This document shows, piece by piece, positions 13,763 through 28,161 of a stretch of 64,000 bases of DNA; position 1 is the stretch's first letter; each line of letters starts with the position of its first letter. Under the pieces are notes generated by a model. The model did not search any database, was not told where the DNA came from, and was given only the letters and a program-made list of their open reading frames with translations. The DNA lies in contig OZ218951.1 of the NCBI GenBank assembly GCA_965112735.1, positions 3,534,001 through 3,598,000 of the forward strand. The letters run 5' to 3'. The position numbers and the translations under genes are program-made. The DNA is from Phaeosaccion multiseriatum (Eukaryota; Protista; Ochrophyta, other classes).

Positions 13763-16700
13763 TCGCTGACACTCTCTCCCCCCCCGTACGCCGCTGAGAC
13801 CCTTCCACTGCCATCCTCACCGCCACCGCCCCTAAAGTCGGCAGCACCCTCCCACTGCCCAGATTGCCCGGACTGCCTCTGCCTCTTGCTCGAGACTCCC
13901 TGGGCCAGCAGAGCCGCATCGGCGCGGGGCGTGGACATGGTCAGAAGCGCCACCCTGGTGTGCGTCACATGAAAGCCCACCTTTCCGTGCAGCAAGGCCC
14001 GCATGGAGTCCCACCAAGACAGCGCAAAAGCACCCACGGGGGGCCGCTTCAAAGCCCCCAAAGGCCCCAACGCCCCACCCCCCGAAGGCAAAGGCCACTC
14101 AGACCCTCGTTGTCCTCCTCCTCTTACGCCTCCGCCGCTCTCCTTCTCCTCTCCGTCCTCCCCCTCCTCCTCACTGCTCTGCGTATCACCAACACCCCCC
14201 CCACGACCGACTCGCCCCAGCCACTTGTCCTGCCCGCAAGAGGGGGGAAAGAGGCGGTGCACCGCAAGCGCAACCTCCTCCAGCGCGAGCACGCAGTCCA
14301 GATCGAAGCTCACAGATGGCGCCTGCACGTGCACCGTCACGTCCATGTAGAGCTTGGGCGGCAGGGAGGCATGGCGGACACCGACAGCGGCGAGATCGAT
14401 CACCGCCCCAGCAGATGCGCAGTGATAATGATGGTGATGATGAGGGCGATACCCACTCCCACTCTCCCCAGAGCCTTGCTGTGTAGAGCCTTGCGTTTGC
14501 TGCGGAAGAGGAGAAGGAGGAGGCCCTGTGACGACCATCCCCCCCACCCCCCCAGCCCCCGCCCTCACCGCGACCCTGACCCTCTCGAGTGTGTGCAGGG
14601 CGGTGGGTGCGCCGGGCACGGCAAGCAGCACGTTGCCACTGAGCCGCAGAGCCGGGCACAAGAGAAGCGGCTGCTCAAAGCGCCGCAGCTGCACCCGCAA
14701 GCCGCCCACCTCAACGCCGCGTACGGTACACACAGTGAGGGAGGCAAACACGGCCTCTGCAGGAGGGGGGTGTTCGTCCAAGTCTCTGAGCATTCTCCTT
14801 GCTACAGCGTCAGCGTCGTCACCGTGTGCCGTGACTCCTCCGGCCCTGCTGCTGCTGCTGCTGCTGCTGGCAACTTCCAGGGAGACGTTCAAGCTCGACA
14901 TGCAGCATGATAAGAGGTTGCCCCTGACTCCTCCTCCTCCTCCTCCTCCTCCTCCTCCTCCTCCTCCTCCTCCTCCTCGAGCAAGAGAGCGTGACGCGCG
15001 CTGCACATACGACACAGCGTCGTGCGCGCATGAGTCGGCCCACTGCTGCTGCCCCTGGCCATAGGACTGCTGCCCCTGGCCATAGGACTGCTGCTGAAGC
15101 TGCTGGCTGCGGAAGACCCGCTTGTCGAGTTCGCTGACCCAGAGGGGCCTCACGAGCTCTAGCCAAGCTTCCATGGGGTCGTCAAGCAACTTCATTTCCA
15201 CTTGGCGGGCTTGCAGCCTCAGTAGACTCTTGCCCCCTCCCTGTCCCTGTCCTCCTGGTGCTGGGGTGGGGAGGGCCACTGCGGGGGGTGGCTTCCAGAA
15301 GAGCAGGTCGAAGTCCGACGAAGGTTTGGGGTGCCATGTGCCTGTCGTCAGCCAAAAAGAAGGAACAACAATAAGAGGAAGGACACAACAACAACAGCAG
15401 CAGCAGTAGCAGCAGTAACGACAAGAACAGCATCAGCGTAAGAGAGAGGTGCTGTGGCAACGTAGGCAGAACATAATGAAGCGAAGATCAAACTTTTGAG
15501 TGTTGCGTGAGAAGAGAGAGAGAGAGAGAGAGAGAAGAGGCGCGCAGTACTTCCCAAGCACGGCACCAAACAGTAAACACCAAACACACACAAGCACACA
15601 CACGCACTTACCTGGGAGAGCCTTGAATGCCTCTACGAAGCCCCTTGCCTGCACCGCCAAAGCCTCCAAGACGCTTGCAACGTAGAACTCATGTTCAACC
15701 GTTACACAACAGCCCCCCGTGCTCACGAGGAAGCCTGCCCGCTGGAGAGAGAACGCCTTGAGGAGTTGGGCATCGTGAGGCCCCAAGAGCTCCAAGAGTG
15801 TGGCCCACTCTGTCTCCGTGCTGCCACACGCGTGCGAGCGGAGCAAGAGCTCGTTGAAACATGGCCCCGCAAAACGCCCCACCCCCCGCCTCCCCCCTCT
15901 CTCCCCTCTACCGAGCCCTTCCCCTTCCCCTTCCCCTCCCCTTTCCCCTTCGAGGATCATGCTCTGGAAGGCACCTTGTCGCACGGTCAAAAGCTCTCTC
16001 CCCTGCAGCTCCAGCCGCAGGCCCTCGGCCCCAAAGTCTTGCCCCAGACTCCTGCTGGTGAAGGCCTCCACAGCCAGCACGGCAGTCAGCTGCTCGGCGG
16101 TCTGCTCTTCGCGCTGTCGCAAGTCCGTCTCCTCCTCCTCCTCCTCCTCCTCCTCCCCGCTCGCTGCGGTTGACACTCCTCCTGCCCCTGCCCTTTGGCT
16201 GGCCCTTACCCTTGTCCTTCCCCTCGCCGCCGAGCCTGCCCCTCGCCGGTTCTTGTTGGCGCAGACGGTAGTGCCCACTCGCTCTGGCCAGCTGGCCTCT
16301 ATGCGCACATCCCTCACTCGCAGCCTCTGCAGTGCATCCCCCGACGCGCTACTGCACACCCCAGCACCTCCACCTCCCGCCTCCCAGTGCCGCAGCCAGT
16401 AGCGGAGCGCCTCTGGCTCCGTCAAGGGGGGATTCTTCCTTATGCTCTTCCTCTCACTCTTGACCATCTCTTGCCCTTGCCCTTGCCCTTGCTCCTTCAT
16501 CAATGTCGCCGGCTCCACCCCCCCCATCCCCCCAGTGCGGGAGAGAGAGTGAGCGTGTGAGTGTAGCCCCCCGACGCGGCGTCGCCTTACGGCCGCCAGC
16601 AAGAGCCAGGTGGAGAGAGTGACGTCTCTGGACACTTTGAGTATGTTGAGCATCACAGCTGGCGTCCACGTCCCTCTCACCCCCGCCGCCAACACGTCAA

Positions 16701-19700
16701 GCAAACGCTGCCTGTCGTAGCCCGAGCCACTGTCAAGCAGACCCCGCCCGTCGTCACAGCCCTTCCTGCCGCCCCCGGTGGGTCGCGTCTCCAGCTCCGT
16801 GGTACTGAAGGCATCCACGCGAAGGTAAGGGGCACCTCTTGCGGCAGGAGGGTGTCGTGTGGTCACAATTGGATGGTGTATAGCCGCCTCGTGGGAGGCA
16901 GAACCGGCAGAACGCAAGCCTAAGCCGCCGGAGAACTGCACAAACTTCGCCCCTCCGTAGCCGCACGTGTAGGCAGTGAGGCGGCGGGCGCTAAAGCAAG
17001 TCATTGGGAGGTAAGATGGCACCGTAGCGCTAGCTGGTCTCCTTCGTCTCCTCCGGGTGGGAGAGTGCGCCGCCGCATCCTCCTCCCTCCCCCCTTCTTG
17101 CTGCTCCTCCACCGCCTCGTTCAAGGTCAGCACGACCTCTTCAATGCTCACCAGCTGACACCTCCACACTTGCTCTCCCTTCTGTGAGCCCTCTGAGAAG
17201 GCGGCCAGCCAGTCTTGCACGGCACTCACCTCCAGCTGTCCCATATCAAGGCCCAAGTGGCAGGGAAACTCCACCTTGACGTGTCTTGCTCGCAAGGACA
17301 AGACTGTCAGGACGGAGTTACAGCACCCGAGGAAGAACGCAGCCCTCCCCTTGTCATCGTGGTCGTCGAGAGGAGGAAGTAGAGGGGCAGCCATCATTCT
17401 CTCTCCCGCAGCATCTGCAGCAGCATCTGCCTGTGTCTGTGGGGGGGTGCGCCCTTCTCCTCGCCCTTGTCCTTGTCCTTGCTCTTGTCGGTTCAGGGGT
17501 GGCGCAAAGTGAGTAAGCGGATGGAGCCCCTCTGTGGTGTCTGTGGCGGCGAGGAAGCCCGCCTGAATCAAGCTCTCGGTGACCATGCAAGTGCAGTGAA
17601 TGCCCACAAAGCTCAGTGCAGGGGTACATTCCGCCCACAGACCCGCAGGCACGTCCATTCGCATCTTGACCCTTGACCCTTCTCCTCTCCCTCGCCCTCC
17701 CCCCCGTTTCCCTTCTTCTTCTCCTTCCCCTTCCGTGCTGGTGCTGGAAAAGGCTCCGTGGGGTACTCCCGTGGACAACCGCACGAGAGGAATGCGCACA
17801 CACGGGACTCGCTGTCGCCGCCGCTTCCTCTGTCCCCTCTGTCCAGGCAGAAGAAGCGCTGGACTGTGGCGTGGTGCCGACGACCCGCTTGCCTCCTCCT
17901 CTGGCGCTGGTTCGGTATCTGTCGCCTCGCTGTCCCCCCCACCGTCGTCAGACCGCCCCCCCTGCTGTTGCCCCGCCCCCAGAACGGAGTCTTCAATCTC
18001 GAGCTCGATAACCACATCAGTCAACGATAAGCCCAACCCGCTGTCACCTCCGCTCCTGATGCCTTCCTCTTCCCCTCCTCCCACCACAGCCCTGACGCCT
18101 CCCCATCGAACCGCTGCTGTAGCAAGTACAAGCCCCTCCTCCTCATCCGTCGCCTCCGTGTGGTCGACCGCTCCGCCCTTGGCAACAGCACCGGCACTCG
18201 CCGTCCCACCCCTTCCTTTACTCGTCATGCGCACCCCCCCGGGCTCCATCTGGACATCAATGTACACCCCTAACGCCCCCAGAGAGCCCTGAGATACCCC
18301 TCCTCCTCCTCCTCCTCCTCCTCCTCCTCCACCACCACTCCATCCCCCCCCAGTGAAGAAGCTCCCCCCTACTTGAGTAAGGGCGAGAGCGAAGTCCAGC
18401 ACGTCTCTAACGACGGTCAGCTGCAGAGAGCCAACTGTTCCGGAAACACGCACGCCTCGACATGGACCATGCAATGGTATCATCATCTCCCCTGCAGCTG
18501 CTCTTCGCGGCAAGGTCAGAGTGAGAGCCCAGCCCGACAGCCGAGCCGGGATGTGAGGCAGCGGCAGTCTCCCACCCACGACCTCGTCCCCCCTTTCCTC
18601 CTCCCCCTCGTCCCTCTCGTCCCCTCTCTCTCTCTCCCTCTTCCTCCCACTACCTGACACATCCCCACCGCCATAGCCGGAGCTGCTTGGCGTAGCGAGC
18701 ATCACCTGATGACAACCGAAGCACACACGGTGTGGTGATGGACCCTCGTCCTCTTCGTGCCCCAGATCATGGCGGTCTCCCTTCACCAAGGCACGAGATT
18801 CGGATCTCAGAAAAAGTGCTTCCGCAGTAACAACGAGTAAGCTCCTCCTCTGTGCTTGGTCCGGCCTCCTCCTCCTCCCCCGCCGCCTCCTGTCCAGGTA
18901 ATTAGTACCGCCAGGGTCTTGCGTGTCTGTTGCTGTCCCTCCCTCGCTACGTAGCCCTGCGGCTGGGCGCCCCTTGTTGCCCAGGTCGAGCTCGAGCTGC
19001 AATGCGTCCACTGTAACGTCCACCTCGTCCAAATCAATCCAACCCAGCGCAACCCATGCCGCCGCCCGCCGGGTACATTCAATTGAAGGAGGAGGAGGAG
19101 GAGGAGGAGAAGAGTCCGTCCTCGCATAAGGAGCGGCAGCAGCTGGAGCCTGACATCCAGTAGCTAGTGACCCCGCCAATGCGTTGACAAGGTCTCGGAC
19201 GCTATCGAGGTCACTACAAGTAAGCTCCAAGCGCGCTGGACAGATATGAATGCCGACCTTCAATCCCTGTTGCTTCTCCCCCAACCCTCCACCCTGCTCC
19301 ACAGGCTGCCTGAGTCGCAATCGCAGGCCCGCAGCGGTGTCCCCACCCCCCCGCAGCAAGTGAAGTCCAGCCTCAGACTCAGACTCACTGGCCACGACTA
19401 GTGCATCCCCAGCAGTTGGGGTGCGCGGTAGCCCGAGTAACGGGCCCGCGCACGGGGTCAAGTCCAAGTTGAGGTAGACCCCGACCAACCCACTCTGCGC
19501 ATCCCTACTCGCCCCAATCCCAATGTCCGCTGTCTCGAAGCGCAATACAGGCGCAGCCAAGCTCGGATCCGCCTCTTGCTCAGGCTCCGTGTGCTGCCGC
19601 CGCTCGGAGTCGCCACAGCAATGGAGTTGCACGGTGGCGGCATGGAGGGCTATATCAACACTCACCATCCGAAGTAGCCATCGAATGGGCCAGGACAAGG

Positions 19701-20374
19701 CAAGCGGGGTGGCATTATCCACGTTCCACCGCCCCAGCCCCCCTTCCTCAAGCCACCTCTTCGCCCTGTCAATAACCTTCTCCGGCGCCTCAGGGCCTCC
19801 TCCTGCTTCTGCTCCTGCCCGTTCATTCGGTACAGCTGTACTGGCTTGGAGCTGCAGGTGGAGCTGCCTCACGCGAATGCGGCAGAGTCCAACCTTGCCT
19901 CCACTAAAGACGAGATCGCTCAAAATATTAACTCTAACGGAGCCCACACTTTGTTGCGCCCCGCCACGACTGCCTTGTCGCTCACGCCTCAAACCAAGCA
20001 GAAGGCCAGGGGCCACCCGAACAGATGTAGGTGTTGAATCTGCCGCACGGGAGGAGAAAGAGCGAGGGGCAGCACGAATTGAGTTTGTCATCGGAAAGGA
20101 AGGGCGCTGGGAATGTGCCATCCGTACCGACTGCTTCCCTATTTGACGCAGATATCTCAGGCGGGCACCCAGTCTCCGCCGCGGAGTGGTAGCGCAGGAA
20201 CCGGCGCAGCTTGACAGTTAGGTACAGGCTGGCGAGCTCGGTGAGGAGGGCGCAGGCAATCGTTCCCCACACTGCCGCCTTTAGCGGCCCCGCCAACAGC
20301 CCTGGAAACAGCCCGACCAGAAGTATCCAAGGAAGAATAGCAGCTGCCACCGCTGCCGCCTGCCAAGGAGGCAT
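3021..20374 (-). CDS. Very large bridge-like lipid transfer protein, BLTP2/KIAA0100/FMP27/Hobbit/SABRE-like, multi-exon
   Basis: N-terminal hydrophobic anchor (ORF 19982-20374) and long exons 15433-20121 and 10756-15279. Family-like motifs LLDDPMEAWLEL, LPPKLYMDV and LSWWDSMRALLHGK. C-terminal Apt1-like block VRLGEVNVITSYGG...NLHVKIHPLIYSNKVWTVRRLLVKMRRDIIVDFLGQ spliced to VSRNFSNIG. Confidence 0.8.
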
Positions 20375-20735
20375 GCTCCAGCAACAAGTTTGGTTCGTCG
20401 GATCGGTCGAGCGAGGAGGAAGGCAGTGGATGGGTGTTGTACGGTTTCGTTTTTTTCAAACTTTCGCTCTCGAGAAGCAGCCCCTTCGCAAAAAGCGGGC
20501 TTGGGAGGAAGGGAAAGCCACCAAGGTCAACAAAAAATCGCAGCCGCAGCGGTAGCACATGGCCTGAAGGAATGCACTGCTACCTGCTGGACTACCGCGA
20601 GGCCTTTCGTAGTGTGCGAGAATCGGGGGCCACCAAGGGAAAAGGGCGCCAGCGATGGGCACCATGACTTGCCGGAAGAAGTGGGCCTGGTGAGGGAGGG
20701 GCGGCTTGCTGAGTGGGAGTCGAGAGGCCGGGACC

Positions 20736-23700
20736 ATGCCTCCACTCACCGTCGTTGGGAGCGCTAAGATGTACGCCACAAAGGTGACAGACAAGGTCCG
20801 GCAAGGCCCTCCTGTCTTGTCACGAGGAGTATGGTCATCCAGGAAGTACAATGATGTTGGCTCTCGGTCGAATGGACCGGCCAGCACACTGCAGTCTTCG
20901 TGGGTGGCAAAGCTGGACGTCTTCATGGACTCAAAGTACGTCCACCTCCCCTTTTTCATATTCATCCACATTTCCGCCCTACAGAGGCCGAGTCCCTTCC
21001 TGCCGTTGTTCCTTGTCCCTCTCTCTTACTTTTCACTCCTCGTTTCCCGCCTCCCTGTCTCTCACGTCTCACACCTCATTTCCCGAAAACACACACACGC
21101 TGTTTCTGGTCCACGCTTTCCTCCACAGCATCTATCTACAGTTCTTCTTGGCCGTCTTGCTGCTCTCCTCTCTCTTCCTCCCCGATGTGTGGATCCTCGG
21201 CAACGTGAGCAGCTCGCACGACATGGAGCTCAACGTGCTGCTCGTTGTGATCTTCATATGCTTTGCCTTTGAGGTTGTGGTGCTCTCGCTGTGCCATAAG
21301 GGATACTTCGGCAGCTTTTTCTTCTGGGCTGATGTGTTAGGGACAGCTTCCGTGCTGCTAGATACGCCTTGGATTGCGGGAAACATCTTTCTCAGTTCAG
21401 GTACGATGCGTGGGAGGGAGTGGGGGGGCGGGGGGGGGGAGAGGTGAATGGAGGAGGAGGAAGTACCTGGAAACCTGCCTGTCGTAGCACAAGGAACGAA
21501 AAGAATGGAGACGCCCTTGTCTTTGAGCGCAACCGTCCGTCCATCCTTCCGTCGCAGAGGTGGCATCAGGGGTTCTCTTGCGGATAGCGAGGACGGCAAA
21601 GGTCAGCGCCCGCTCGAGCCGGCTGGCCAAGCTAACGCGTCTGTTCAGATACGTCAGCATACGGCGGGAAAGGGGGAAGATGAAGGCCCGCTCAGCAGCG
21701 CAGGTGGTGCCTGTAGAAGCCGCCCCGGAGCCAGAGGCGACCACTTACAAACGAGGCAGCATCGGCCGGAGACCGCGCGACAGCGTCACCCGCAGAAGCA
21801 ATAAGACTACAGAACCGCAGAATGCTCCTGCGGGGGGGGTAGGAGCAGGGCCTTCTGGTGGAAGCTCGACCGAGGTGGGTGTCGCTGAGCGCGAAATGAA
21901 GCGAATGGGGACATCTCCATCTGTACCGTGCTTTGTTCGAATCACGTGCTTCCCTTCCTTCCTTCCTTCCGGGCCGCCGAATGTGTTTCGATTCGGGTCT
22001 TCTTCTCACCGTAGCTCTCCACTCACCTCGCCTCACCTCCACTCCACTCCAGATGGCAACATCAAAGGTATCGAGCATACTGTCCAAGAAAATCGCTGCC
22101 CTGGCGCTGCTGCTCGTCTTCGTGATCCCTCTGCTAGATCCGCTACGGTCCTTCAACAGCCCTCAGGTTCGTACAAGAGGGAGGGAGGCCGACAGAGGCT
22201 TTCATCTCTTGCCCCTTGCCCCTTGATCCTCCATTCGACTCTCGTTCTTCTAGCTCTCTCTCTGACGTGTTCCTGACGGTCACACCCGGAGTGCAATGCG
22301 ATGATGCCGTAATTCCCCACCTCTCCTTTCGTTCTGACACGCTCTCTCTTCCTCTCTGTCGTGTTGTGTGTGCAATACACACCATCACCAACAGGCGTGG
22401 TTAGACAGCTTCGACACCGTGGCCGAGCCCGGCCAAGCAGAAGCAAGCCTCATCGCCGCGCAGGTCGAGGCCTTTGAGGGTTTCTATGACGACATGGACA
22501 TTAGCCCTCTCAGCCTGAGCATCAGCGGGGCAGCTGGTGGGGATTGGACCTTCCCCCCCCTGCGCAGCATCATAAGGGAGGACAATGTGCTCGTCTTCAC
22601 CAGTGACTTATGTAGAGCGGAGTTTGACTTTACCGAAATCCGCATGGCGTCCAGCCTCAGCTCGCTGCTGACCGTCCTCCTGGTGGTGGTGGTGCTAATG
22701 GGCTTCTCCGTGTCGCTCAACCGAGTGGTGGAGCGGCACGTTGTGGAGCCGGTGTCCCGCATGCTCAACAGTCTCAAGGTGTCTCTCAGCACCATTAGCT
22801 CCAACTTTAAGGCGCTCGACCTCTTCTCACACGAGGAGGGAGAGGGACCCGTGCATGAAGAGGATGAGGCGCTTGACGTCTTGCTCGAGAGCGGCCACTT
22901 GGAAGGTGAGGGAGGAAGGGAGAGAGGGAGGGGGGAGGGTGGGGCTGCCTAGCTACCTTTGGGTAAGCGTAGCAAGGGCGTGCGCGTTAGAGACAGAAGG
23001 CTTCCTGTTGTACTGGAGGAAGGAGACTGAGTAGCCCGCTTTGTTCCTCCTCGCCCGCTTCTGTCTGTCAGCCGCCATTGAGAGGCTCGCGAGCTTGATT
23101 GCGCACCGCGTGGAGACGAGCAACACGGACGGCATGACGGACCTGGACAACGCCACCAAGGAGTGGATAGGCATGACTTACATGCACGGCCAGACGCAGG
23201 GACAGGGGCAGCCTGCCGATGGGAGGAAGACAATTGTACGTACGGCAGACAGAGATAAAACAAATGGGGATGGAAAGGGGTATGGACATGTAGGCCCTTT
23301 TCCATGGGCCAATTGCACGCACACAATGCACACACAGAAGATGGACTGGCAGACCGACCCAACGAACGCTCCAATTCACCGCTCCCCCCTTTCTCCCCTC
23401 CCTCTGTTCTCTCCTCCCTCCCCTCTCTCATCTCTCCTCCTTCCCATCCCCTCTCCCCTCTTCCCTCCTTCTCCCATCCGGTGGTCAACCACACCCACAG
23501 CTCTCTAGCAGAGTATCAGAGGGTGTCTTGAGCGCAAGTGGCAGCAAAGACTTTTTGTCCTTGTCGCAGCGCTCCTCCACGGGAGACTTGAAGGCCGTCA
23601 TAGAGGCGAACGACAAGGACGGGGTGGTTGTGAAGGAGATTAGTAGCTTTGAGATCATGCTCTCATCTGCGGAGTACAGGGAGATGCAGACGTGGCAGTT

Positions 23701-26700
23701 CAACCCCCTCAGGCTCAAAGCAAGCAAGGTGGGTATGTGTTTAGTATGTGTGTGTGTGTGTGTGTGTGTGTCCGGTGGGGTGGAGGGAGAGTGCGATGTA
23801 GGGCCTTCCTGCCCTGCCTGATGCCGATATCTACTTGCCTGCCTGCCTGCCTCGTCCCCATACTCCTGTCTGCCTGCGTACACGCCTGCTTGCCCATACG
23901 CCAATATGCCTGCCGGCCTTTGCCTCGATAGCGCCCTTCCGCCCGTCGTGTTATCCCTGCCACTTGGACACCCACACCTTTTGCCTCACACCTCACACCT
24001 CACACCTCACACCTCACACCTCACATCTCATACCTCACACCCACACCTCACACCTCACGCCCACACCTTGCCTCACACCTTTTGCCTCACACCTCACACC
24101 TCACACCTCACACCTCACACCTCACATCTCATACCTCACACCCACACCTCACACCTCACGCCCACACCTTGCCTCACACCTTTTGCCTCACACCTCACAC
24201 CTCACACCTCACACCTTACACCTCACACCTCACACCTCACACCTCACACCTCACATCTCATACCTCACAACCACACCTCACACCTCACACCCACACCTTG
24301 CCTCACACCTTTTGCCTCACACCTCACACCTCACACCTCACACCTCACACCTCACACCTCACACCTCACACCTCACACCTCACACCTCACACCTCACACC
24401 TCACACCTCACATCTCATACCTCACAACCACACCTCACACCTCACACCCACACCTTGCCTCACACCTTTTGCCCCACACCTCACACCTCACACCTCACAC
24501 CTCACACCTTATCTTACCTTCGCTTTCCTCACCTTCCCTCAGTTGATCGACACGGTGCTGGCGATGTTCCAATCCCGCGGCGTCCTTGATCTGTACTGCA
24601 CGCCCGAGACCTTGGCGCGTTTCATGCAAGAGGTCCAGGTGGGTTAGGGAGGGGGAGAGAGAGGGGGGGAGGGGGGAAGGGAGGGAGAGAGAGAGAGAGA
24701 GGGGGGGGGGGGAGGGAGGGAGGGAGGGAGGAAGGGAGGGAGGGAGGGAGGGAGGGAGGGAGGGAGGGAGGGAGGGAGGGAGGGAGGGAGGGAGGGAGGG
24801 AGGGAGGGAGGGAGGGAGGGAGAGAGGGAGGGAGCGGAGAGCGGGAGGGAGGGAGGGGAGAGCGGGAGGGGAGGGGAAGGAGGAAGGAAGGAAGAATGGG
24901 TACAGGTGGGTTGGTTGGGTCATTAGTCACCTTCAAGGGACAGTGCATTGCTGCGGGGCCTCCATGCGTTTTGTGTGTGCGTGTGTGTGAGAGAGAGAGA
25001 GAGAGAGAGTGTGTGTTTGAGTTCGGTCGATTTCAGGAGGAGCTCCGGCGCTCTGACATTTTCTCACACCCCTCTCCCCTCCCCCCTCTCCCCTCTCTCC
25101 TCTCTCCTCTCCCCTCATCGCATATCACAGGCTGGCTACCTGAACAACCCATACCACAACTTCCTCCACGCCATCGACGTGTGCCACGCGTGCTACAGAT
25201 TCATACAGATATGCAATTGCGCTCAGGTAGGTTGGCACTGAGCACACACACACACACACACACATACACATACACATACACATGCAAGGAGAGAGGAAGA
25301 GAGGAGAGGGCGTGGCGTACGGTACACACACCACACATGCACACACACTAGGGAAGAGCAATCAAGAGGCAGGAAGGGAGCGAGAGGGTGTGCGTGTTCC
25401 TCTCTCTATACAACAGAGCAAAGATACCCCCACACACACGCGAATGCATGCCTTGTGACTGGGGGTTGCGCGAAAGGCACTGCCCATCACCCTTGGAGTG
25501 AAGTTGAGTCGCGAGAACCGACCTGACCGCCTTCACCACCCCACCCTACCTCTCCCCTCTCCCCTCTCCCCTCTACTCAGCTCCTCTCCACGGTGGACGT
25601 GTTTAGTCTGCTTGTGGCCGCGATAGGACACGACATCGGACACTTCGGACTCAACAAGTACGTCAGCAAAGCACCACCACTCCATCCACGCGAGGGACTC
25701 GGACTGCTCCGACATCGTACTAATCGAACCACTCCATCCCCCTCCCCCCTTTCTCCTTCCCCCGCCCCTCCTCCCTCGGCCCCACCCCTCTTCTCTTGGC
25801 CCCACTTACTCGTTAGTCCCTACTTGGTGACTACGAAGCACGAGCTCGCGCTGCTACACAACGACGTGTCTCCCCTGGAGAATATGCACTGCAGCACTCT
25901 GTATAAGGTAAGGGGAGAAAAGATATCCGCCATTCCCACACACACACACGTACGCACACATACACGCAAAAGCACACAAACACGCAAAAGCGCATATGCA
26001 AACACACATGCACGCACGCATGCACACTTACTTACATACTTACTTTCACACGCACCTACCCACACATTTCCTTCCCTCCTTCCTTCCTTCCTTCCTTCCT
26101 TCCTTCCTTCTTTCCTTCCTTCCTTCCTTCCTTCCTCCCTCCCTCCCTCCCTTCCTTCCTTCCTTCTTTCCCTACTTCCCAGGTGGTACGCGACAAAAAG
26201 GCGGACATCTTTGAGTTGATGGCAGCCGACGAGTGGCAGGAGTCGCGCAAAATCATCATCACGTGCATACTTGGCACCGACATGAGCCATCACTTCAGCC
26301 AAATCAACAGAGCCACCATCTTCTTTGACGTCAATCAAGAAGAGCTGGCCTCTCTCCATGCGGGAGAAGAGGTGGCGGAGGAGCTAGGTGAGACAGAGAG
26401 CAATGACTCGGATTCCTGGAGGAGGAAGAGCAGCAACAGCAACAGCAGAAGGAGGAGGAGGAGGAGGAGGAGGAGGAGGAGGAGGAGGAGAAGGAGGAGG
26501 AGGAGGAGGAGGAGGAGGAGGAGGAGGAGGAGGAGGAGGAGGAGGAGGAGGAGGAGGAGGAGGAGGAGGAGGAGGAGGAGGAGGAGGAGGAGGAGGAGGA
26601 GGAGGAGGAGGAGGAGGAGGAGGAGGAGGAGGAGGAGGAGGAGGAGGAGGAGGAGGAGGAGGAGGAGGAGAAAGAGGAGGAGGAGGAGGGGGAAGAGGAG

Positions 26701-26761
26701 GAGAAAGAGGAGGAGGAGGAGGGGGAAGAGGAGGAGTAGTAGTAGTAGTAGTAGTAGTAGC

Positions 26762-26802
<41 letters not shown>

Positions 26803-26811
26803 GAGGAGGAG

Positions 26812-26846
<35 letters not shown>

Positions 26847-28161
26847 GGAGGAGGAGGAGGAGGAGGAGGAGGAGGAGGAGGAGGAGGAGGAGGAGGAGGA
26901 GGAGGAGGAGGAGGAGGAGGAGGAGGAGGAGGAGGAGGGGGAGGAGGAGGAGGAGGAGGAGGGCTGCTGGGGATGGGTAGGGCGGGAGCGGAGGCATGTG
27001 ATTCGGCAAGCATACATGCGCGTGTTTAACTCAACTTTCTATCCCTCCCTCCCTCCCTCCCTCCCTCCCACCCTCCCCGGACCCCCGCCAGACACCCTGA
27101 GCCAGCCCGAGAACAAGCTCTTCATAATGGAGCTCTTCCTGCATGGAGCGGACGTTTCAAACCCCGTCAAGCCGTTTCATGTGTCGCAAAAGTGGGCGTA
27201 CCTTATCATGGAGGAGTTTTTTGCCCAAGGGGACAAGGAGAGAGAGGCAGATCTCCCCATTAGTCCCATGTGTGATAGAAACTCCGTCAACATTCCAATG
27301 CTGCAGGTGCGTGAGTGCGCGAGTGCGCGAGTGTGCGTGTGTGTGCGCGTGTGGAGTGAGGCTCTGAATGATTGAGCTTGTGCGCGAGTGTCGAGATCCT
27401 GGCGTGGGCAGCTTGACTTTTCCAGTCCTGCCCGAAGGGGTTTTGTCCTGTAGTTCCCGTCCCTTCACGCACGGGCAAGAGCGCTCGCTCGCTGACCTCT
27501 CTTCCTCTCTCTCGCTGTCTCTCCCTCGCTCTCGCTCTCGTCCTCTCTCTCTCTTCCTCTCTTCAACTCTCTCGCTCTCACCCCCCCCCCCTCTCTGTCT
27601 TCCTCTCTTTCCCCCCTTCTCACTTGTCTAGATGAACTTTCTGGAGTTTGTGGTGGCACCACTGTACATCCAGCTGGCCTGCCTCTTCCCTCCACTCGAC
27701 CCTCTGCTGGATACCCTACTGGAAAACCAAAAGGAGTGGGCAAGCAAGCGAGAGTACGACCTGAGGTGCGAGCCCAAACTCGACTGTCAAGTCAGGACAA
27801 TCGGTTGACTGTCGAGTTTGGGGCCATGCCTCTTCTGGGGGACCCTCGAGCTTGGGCTGACGTCAAGACTACTTACCCGCCTACGCCTCTCTTGTTTGCG
27901 ACAGTCGATGTGCAGAGTCAGGAACATTGGTGTCTCCTACCGGCTCTGTGCCTGAGTCATCCCCGGGGACTGATCAATGACCCCACCACCCGCCGCCCCC
28001 CCCCGTCCTGACCACCCCCCAATGTTCGTTCTATCAAAAGGAAATCCATGAAGCGAGGTCCTGAGGCGGACAATAGTGAGAGTGAGGAGCAAGTACTCAA
28101 CCTCGAGACTCGTATCAAGACCCTCGGGGCCAAGCTGCGCCCCCCCGCCGTGGACGCGTAG
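20736..28161 (+). CDS. Class I 3',5'-cyclic nucleotide phosphodiesterase with N-terminal 6-TM voltage-sensor-like region
   Basis: Catalytic motifs NPYHNFLHAIDV (25131-25226), AAIGHDIGHFGLN, NDVSPLENMHC, ILGTDMSHH, LHGADVSNP...W...EEFFAQGDKE...ISPMCDR and QMNFLEFVVAPLY. Upstream exons, joined by in-phase GT-AG junctions where checked, encode TM helices and an R/K-x-x repeat. Confidence 0.85.
23985..24508 (+). repeat. Intronic (CACACCT)n heptamer array with a recurring higher-order unit
   Basis: Visible tandem array. The block CACATCTCATACCTCAC...CACCTTGCCTCACACCTTTTG recurs four times. Confidence 0.95.
26450..26962 (+). repeat. Intronic (GGA)n/(AGT)n trinucleotide tract
   Basis: Visible tract between the donor GAGCTAG|GTGAGA and the acceptor near 27090. 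Confidence 0.95.

Follow-up and report, generated by a model that had tools for sequence, protein, structure and literature searches.

A predicted voltage-sensor domain joined to a class I phosphodiesterase in one gene of Phaeosaccion multiseriatum

Could membrane voltage control the breakdown of cyclic nucleotides in the ochrophyte Phaeosaccion multiseriatum? The question is raised by a gene within a stretch of 64,000 nucleotides from this organism (positions 3,534,001 to 3,598,000 of contig OZ218951.1, assembly GCA_965112735.1), which we refer to as the window and whose positions we count from its first letter. An initial annotation, made from the sequence alone, had described a voltage-sensor-like module fused to a cyclic-nucleotide phosphodiesterase (PDE) at 20736-28161 and had proposed a voltage-regulated PDE. 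We found that this gene belongs to a large and unrecognized family; the coupling of an S4 sensor to an enzyme is already known, and here the output is a PDE. The architecture and the homologs support the gene as a candidate voltage-regulated PDE. From the sequence and the predicted fold, we lean towards the view that the voltage-sensor cassette on this membrane PDE allows the membrane voltage to regulate cyclic-nucleotide hydrolysis.

The window is eukaryotic DNA with a GC content of about 0.58 and with introns that are rich in microsatellites. By joining exons from the DNA around each stop-free piece, we obtained a single gene of 14 exons on the + strand (20736-27808), with one frame of 913 codons. 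All 13 introns are GT-AG, their acceptors are pyrimidine-rich, and their phases all fit. The frame starts at the first ATG downstream of an in-frame stop. The stop-free + strand pieces within this range contain all of the peptides that were quoted in the initial annotation, and each element that it listed is present at or close to the place where it was put. The predicted product (the window protein) begins with a cytosolic N-terminus (residues 1-66), followed by the helices S1 (about 70-90), S2 (about 100-122), S3 (about 128-150), and S4 (about 160-190). Next are a basic low-complexity linker (residues 186-262), the transmembrane (TM) helix TM5 (residues 275-295), a loop or ectodomain (residues 296-385), and TM6 (residues 387-408); the latter extends as a long helix in which a proline is conserved. 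A second helix and then a linker lie downstream of an acidic loop, and the PDE core is at residues 630-880 or so.

Are the sensor exons and the PDE exons parts of one gene? The alternative is that the gene model wrongly merged two adjacent genes, one for a small voltage-sensor domain (VSD) protein and one for a PDE. The one RNA run matched low-complexity DNA only, and two of the introns, with lengths of 814 and 704 bases, are filled with repeats, which would fit two genes. However, transcript-derived homologs contain all of the parts within one open reading frame (ORF). One of these homologs, P0003 from the raphidophyte Chattonella subsalsa, is the complete ORF of an assembled transcript (MMETSP0947), and blastp aligned it to the spliced model in one segment (residues 41-902 of the model to 43-821 of P0003, 35% identity, E = 5.5e-167). 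Five further full-length proteins align with the spliced model in the same way. Relatives are also encoded by transcripts of Florenciella (P0037) and Paraphysomonas and by Triparma genomes, and homologs in the MMETSP and EukProt transcriptomes are flagged "type:complete". When we used P0003 as the query for tblastn against the window, which does not depend on any choice of splice sites, we found nine collinear matches on the + strand (21067-27772).

The exons between the sensor and the PDE also argue against two genes. Exons 5-7, which form the linker, are themselves conserved, and helices span their junctions. Conserved motifs and helices cross the 1/2, 5/6, and 13/14 junctions; all of the junctions are phase-compatible, and no exon requires its own start or stop. 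Exon 5 encodes the loop, TM6, and helix only and includes neither sensor nor PDE sequence; as the query against 1.84 billion representative proteins, it gave 28 matches, of which at least 13 have a C-terminal PDEase_I domain and several have an N-terminal Ion_trans domain. No relative turned up when metagenome contigs were scanned with this exon. The initial annotation had assumed that the TM exons are linked to the PDE exons, and this is supported by collinearity with single proteins from complete transcripts, such as Chattonella P0003 and Florenciella P0037. It had also suggested a search for the architecture across stramenopiles: over 100 protein clusters of ochrophytes and dinoflagellates align with the spliced model and have their parts in the same order. 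Judging from these sequence comparisons, the sensor exons and the PDE exons are one gene, and we consider a false merger to be very improbable.

Is the N-terminal module a voltage sensor? Three TM helices and an S4-like run had been reported, and both were found. S1 (with the motif LPD), S2 (F..E), and S3 (FFFWAD) are all encoded by exon 2 (21129-21400), including the quoted stretch KGYFGS...FFFWAD. This exon matches residues 53-162 of P0003 by tblastn (E = 3e-23). S4 is encoded at 21581-21649 in exon 3 (21558-21874), where residues 171-203 of P0003 align at 64% identity. The translation of 21581-21649 is exactly the 23 residues that had been quoted, with eight arginines or lysines (residues 166, 169, 172, 176, 179, 182, 185, and 188; spacing 3,3,4,3,3,3,3). 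The charge-transfer residues of the window protein are FAFE in S2 and WAD in S3.

Several kinds of comparison link this module to known sensors. Pfam's Ion_trans family (PF00520) matches P0003 at 27-29.9 bits (the cut-off is 25), and 12 of the 21 sensors from the family match it with E <= 0.1; no other family recurs. We built a hidden Markov model (HMM) for the sensor using 21 homologs, with the window gene excluded, and it gives the spliced product a score of 164.8 bits. When the profile of 21 family sensors was compared to the sequences in PDB, only two hits had E <= 1: Nav1.6, in its domain IV sensor (E = 0.017), and Hv1 (E = 0.16). The F..E of S2, the aspartate of S3, and the first arginines of S4 are in register with both of these proteins. 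Also, a comparison of exon 2 by protein-language features gave Atlas clusters of Ion_trans proteins (score 0.98).

For the fold, we used an AlphaFold model of residues 48-430 of P0003, whose sensor helices align without gaps to those of the window protein. The model has a pLDDT (predicted local distance difference test) of 82 and a pTM (predicted template modeling score) of 0.74. When the model was re-aligned to solved chains, the crystal structure of the Ci-VSP sensor came first (Z = 11.8, root-mean-square deviation (rmsd) 3.5 Å, 131/136 residues). As the initial annotation had anticipated, the model resembles VSD folds: all of the 50 best chains are voltage sensors (from Nav, Kv, Cav, CatSper, or Ci-VSP), over residues 12-146 of the model. 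Foldseek with the whole N-terminal model also ranked channels first, with E no better than 0.057. We conclude that the N-terminal module is a predicted S1-S4 voltage-sensor domain of the Ion_trans superfamily.

The residues that would sense voltage are conserved across the family. Among 132 distinct family sensors, the aspartate of S3 is present in all 132. The glutamate of S2 is present in 128 (the remaining four have aspartate), and so is the phenylalanine three residues ahead of it (128/132). All eight basic positions of S4 are kept in 98 of the sensors and seven are kept in another 27; the minimum is five. The window protein has the complete set of sensing residues. The family is found in raphidophytes, dictyochophytes, bolidophytes, and chrysophytes among the ochrophytes, and in the dinoflagellates Biecheleria, Polykrikos, Polarella, Symbiodinium, Durusdinium, and Effrenium. 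The conservation of the gating-charge residues from ochrophytes to dinoflagellates argues that the putative sensor is functional.

In the databases, members of the family are labeled "Pde9a", "Pde1c", "PDE4", or "hypothetical". The family's sensor has been overlooked because these proteins are annotated only under PDE names or as hypothetical. For instance, NCBI records list the dinoflagellate members P0129, P0141, and P0151 as Pde9a, Pde1c, or Cam-PDE 1C; such names were copied from animal PDE subfamilies, and they mask the membrane sensor. Some members (P0083, P0156, P0158, and P0159) have ankyrin repeats (PF12796 and PF00023) beside the cassette and the PDE.

The C-terminal part was described as a complete class I PDE domain, which holds. 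Five exon pieces jointly span positions 1-238 of Pfam's PDEase_I profile (PF00233). Three of these pieces are above the cut-off of 24.8 bits (78.9, 48.5, and 37.9 bits), and two weaker pieces (21.6 and 12.1 bits) are below the cut-off when taken alone. The PDE core begins in exon 9 (25131-25226) with YHNFLHA (profile positions 1-25). Exon 10 (25581-25657) encodes the metal site HDIGH, exon 11 (25817-25907) encodes ENMH (profile positions 53-82), and exon 12 (26183-26387) encodes TDM (profile positions 83-135, E = 2e-09). Exon 13 (27092-27306) encodes HGADVSNP (E = 6e-22), and its last codon is the purine-clamp glutamine, at the exon 13/14 junction. The core ends in exon 14 (27632-27808), which also contains the stop codon. 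All of the catalytic motifs were found (HNFLH at residue 636, HDIGH at 676, ENMH at 706, TDM at 747, and HGAD at 801). In 20 diverse members of the family, the motif residues are invariant or nearly so (at least 90% for the clamp glutamine). When exon 13 was compared to solved chains, the best matches included PDE1B and PDE4D (E = 1e-15 to 1e-17). Because the catalytic motifs are intact in the sequence, the enzyme looks active.

What lies between the sensor and the enzyme? Two further TM helices around a loop had been reported, and these are encoded by 22053-22166 (exon 4) and 22395-22905 (exon 5); the loop has about 90 residues, and the quoted NRVVERHVVEPVSRM comes after it. Exon 4 encodes an amphipathic helix and TM5, with the conserved motif RVAAL...P.L. 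Exon 5 encodes the folded ectodomain, TM6, and a long cytosolic helix with an invariant proline. In an AlphaFold model of exon 5 from the window (pLDDT 89.6), two helices and four strands are followed by a helix of 68 residues that includes TM6. A second linker helix begins in exon 5 and continues in exon 6 (23072-23235), which also encodes the quoted IERLASLIA and a conserved D..T..W motif. Exon 7 (23522-23728) encodes more of the linker and the first pre-catalytic helices of the PDE, and it lies inside the single blastp alignment to P0003. More pre-catalytic helices are encoded by exon 8 (24543-24638).

In public annotation, the homologs are assigned to PF26726 (Helical_RasGEFs, Pfam 38), and the model of exon 5 matches the folds of Atlas clusters with PF26726 (TM-score 0.70-0.79). 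Several Atlas clusters have the shape of the whole cassette (343-354 residues aligned, TM-score 0.73-0.76). These include a cluster of 279 putative phosphodiesterases, most commonly from Perkinsozoa, and clusters that carry Guanylate_cyc and Ion_trans, whose members are green algal, diatom, or ciliate proteins. We also considered whether the helix after TM6 is a HAMP domain (PF00672) and rejected this, as none of 60 family segments matched at E <= 1; the helix recalls HAMP in its position and its conserved proline alone. There is a weaker Atlas match to a Spirochaetota cluster (63 members, Ion_trans in 37% of them, TM-score of 0.65 both ways over 317 residues). The modeled shape hints that this cluster is a prokaryotic relative of the sensor-plus-two-helix module.

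How might voltage act on the PDE? A change in the membrane potential would move S4. Five of the basic residues of S4 are probably in the membrane, and the other three are probably on its cytosolic extension. The movement of S4 would be passed to TM6 via the S4-TM5 linker and the packing of the helices. TM6 and the signaling helix, which is probably a dimeric coiled coil, would then shift, and this shift would turn the catalytic dimer of the PDE on or off. Cyclases and PDEs that bear the same cassette could together give push-pull voltage control of cyclic AMP (cAMP) and cyclic GMP (cGMP), perhaps in flagella.

Several observations weigh against a voltage-regulated PDE. The sensor exons of the window, if taken singly, do not match Pfam's Ion_trans, which exceeds its cut-off on the homolog P0003, and exon 2 as a single-sequence query matched neither a Pfam family nor a sensor in PDB; the relation becomes visible only with profiles and by comparison of folds. 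The predicted fold was compared using a homolog that is 35-40% identical, not the window protein. For a helical bundle, Z scores of 11-12 for such a model are middling, so we rely on the agreement of sequence, motifs, and fold to call the sensor. We aligned sequencing runs over 20700-26450 of the window, and the sole RNA run (a metatranscriptome) gave low-complexity DNA matches only; the remaining four runs gave DNA contigs that are identical to the window. Two helices, the ectodomain, and a linker of about 150 residues separate the sensor from the enzyme, which would make the coupling indirect. Also, about 65 residues, basic and of low complexity, are inserted in the linker between S4 and TM5 (21650-21874); most of the homologs do not have this insertion, which could loosen the coupling. 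Finally, the ectodomain suggests an additional input besides voltage, which might even be the dominant one.

This last point leads to a different account of the protein, as a receptor-type PDE. The ectodomain would bind a ligand or an ion on the outside, TM6 would carry the signal as in bacterial sensor kinases, and the voltage sensor would merely modulate the response or set its gain. The ectodomain is confidently folded in the model (pLDDT above 90), TM6 extends as the 68-residue helix, and it is TM6 rather than S4 that is joined to the enzyme. Bacterial sensor kinases that have PAS, CHASE, or GAPES domains are among the Atlas matches by shape (TM-score 0.53-0.58). On the other hand, the sequence of the ectodomain is weakly conserved except at a few positions, and no solved structure of a sensor domain rose above noise when compared to it: the top match, with Z = 6.4, falls on the long helix. 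The near-invariant charges of S4 and their counter-charges are also hard to reconcile with a mere modulator. We consider a receptor-type PDE to be unlikely, though less so than two other accounts that concern the membrane part. One is that the protein is a channel-enzyme: TM5 and TM6 would form a pore in an oligomer, or the sensor itself would conduct ions, and the PDE would be regulated by that current or would regulate it, as has been suggested for the cyclase of Paramecium. The six-helix topology is channel-like, and the cassette is shared with the cyclases of ciliates, among which the Paramecium cyclase was reported to have a K+ conductance (cited in PMC10651576). But a folded ectodomain of about 90 residues sits where the pore loop would be, and the structural matches end at S4: residues 12-146 fit, and longer alignments have an rmsd of 7 Å or more. 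We rejected a K+ pore because the pore-loop motif G[YF]G is not found anywhere in the protein. A channel-enzyme of any kind seems quite improbable.

The other account is that the sensor is an inert relic, which serves only as a membrane anchor or a targeting signal for a PDE that is always active. Many protist PDEs have TM anchors of no known function (PMC8809380). A simple anchor would not need the invariant aspartate of S3 or the S4 charges, of which at least seven of the eight are kept in 125 of the 132 sensors, and we give this account as little weight as the channel-enzyme. Regulation of the PDE by voltage remains the reading that we favor.

How does the window protein compare to systems that are already known? 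The initial annotation had noted a likeness to the ion-channel-like adenylyl cyclases of protists, and our comparisons bear this out. The sensor HMM matches a transcript with Ion_trans and a cyclase (P0042, 56 bits) and a protein with a cyclase and PF26726 (P0041, 51 bits). Atlas clusters of the cyclase type share the fold (TM-score 0.70-0.76 over 143-354 residues). The N-terminal cassette is common to the window protein, the ion-channel-like cyclases of ciliates and apicomplexans (Weber et al. 2004, as cited in PMC10651576), and the VSD-cyclases of Phytophthora, and the ion-channel-like cyclases are found in the same lineages (Stramenopiles and Alveolates) as the family of the window protein. 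In contrast to the ion-channel-like cyclases, the window protein has a class I PDE in place of the class III cyclase, has no match to Guanylate_cyc, and has no K+ pore motif. The ion-channel-like cyclases of protists have not been fully characterized as recombinant proteins (PMC10651576). A 2025 paper on the VSD-cyclases of Phytophthora describes a family that is confined to Stramenopiles and Alveolates, with one member on the flagellum; it does not mention PDEs (PMC12223298).

The voltage-sensing phosphatases (VSP) Ci-VSP and TPTE, like the window protein, have an S1-S4 sensor without a pore on a cytosolic enzyme, and among solved structures the sensor of Ci-VSP gave the top match. In VSP, S4 enters a PTEN-like lipid phosphatase via a short linker, whereas in the window protein, two TM helices, the ectodomain, and a long helical linker are interposed. 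Also, the enzyme of the window protein is predicted to act on cyclic nucleotides, and that of VSP acts on lipids. The window protein is not a member of the VSP family, but it may work in a similar way.

The choanoflagellate protein Rh-PDE is also a membrane sensor joined to a class I PDE, via a helical linker of 76 residues, and its activity tracks the state of the sensor (PMC7644710). The sensor of Rh-PDE is a light-responsive, retinal-binding rhodopsin, which is not homologous to the voltage sensor. Its coupling via a helical linker resembles the coupling that we propose from TM6 through the long helix to the PDE.

The initial annotation knew of no characterized example of a voltage-regulated PDE, and this agrees with our literature searches on voltage-sensing phosphodiesterases, in which no such enzyme was described. 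A 2023 review of proteins with voltage sensors covers channels, Hv1, VSP, the sperm Na+/H+ exchanger, and protist cyclases, and it includes no PDE (PMC10651576). A related observation concerns Toxoplasma: part of an ion transport domain (pfam00520) was noted along with PDEase_I in TgPDE4 (PMC8809380, PMC7720076) and in TgPDE16 (in one of these two papers). By the domain annotation in those papers, which did not study the ion-transport part, TgPDE4 and TgPDE16 have the same pair of domains as the family of the window protein. Our search with the family profile did not return any protein from Toxoplasma.

Few enzymes or transporters are known, or have been proposed, to be driven directly by an S4 sensor: VSP and the sperm Na+/H+ exchanger are two of them, and the protist cyclases are a less secure case (PMC10651576). 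We raise the tentative possibility, with less confidence than the regulation of this one PDE by voltage, that the family and the cyclases with the same cassette form a new class of voltage-regulated enzymes. Together, they would be a direct push-pull converter of membrane potential to cAMP or cGMP in stramenopiles and alveolates, including dinoflagellates. If so, neither Ca2+ nor G proteins would be needed for this conversion, and a voltage-gated PDE would supply the missing "off" arm for cyclic nucleotides. This could help to explain how voltage is linked to flagellar behavior in excitable protists, including the raphidophytes and dinoflagellates that form blooms. If the proposal is correct, the protein might also be a compact tool for converting voltage to a drop in cAMP or cGMP.

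Some details of the gene model allow more than one choice. Exon 1 (20736-20935) contains the start codon and encodes the cytosolic N-terminus; its donor is CTCAAA|gtacgt, and a conserved family motif (LD....Q) straddles the exon 1/2 junction. Exons 6 and 7 could be joined at 23235/23522 or at 23239/23520, and the latter choice adds two residues. At the 3' end, the last exon may be read through, which puts the stop at 27808; alternatively, a donor after 27765 is joined to an exon at 28041-28161. This donor is phase-compatible with the additional exon and gives the end (28161) that was originally annotated. With either ending, the homology to the Chattonella protein ends at about 27772. After S4, exon 3 encodes about 75 residues of the basic, low-complexity linker to TM5. 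It is speculation from the sequence, but the Arg-Arg-Ser and Arg-x-x-Ser sites in the linker's insertion might be targets of kinases.

The introns of the gene carry the microsatellites (CCTCACA)77, (AGGG)61, (TTCC)28, and (AGG)171, at 23984-24509, 24646-24891, 26068-26179, and 26450-26962. All three + strand frames run open through the (AGG)171 tract, as poly-Arg, poly-Glu, or poly-Gly, and ORF callers would misread it as coding. We rejected these frames at 26388-27091 as an intron repeat, because the flanking exons are set apart by 15 residues in the homolog, as compared to 17 in the gene model.

Upstream of the gene, the - strand contains an ORF of 1562 codons that is rich in low-complexity sequence (15433-20121). 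It starts about 615 bases from the PDE gene and is divergent from it, and this pair may share a promoter region at 20122-20735.

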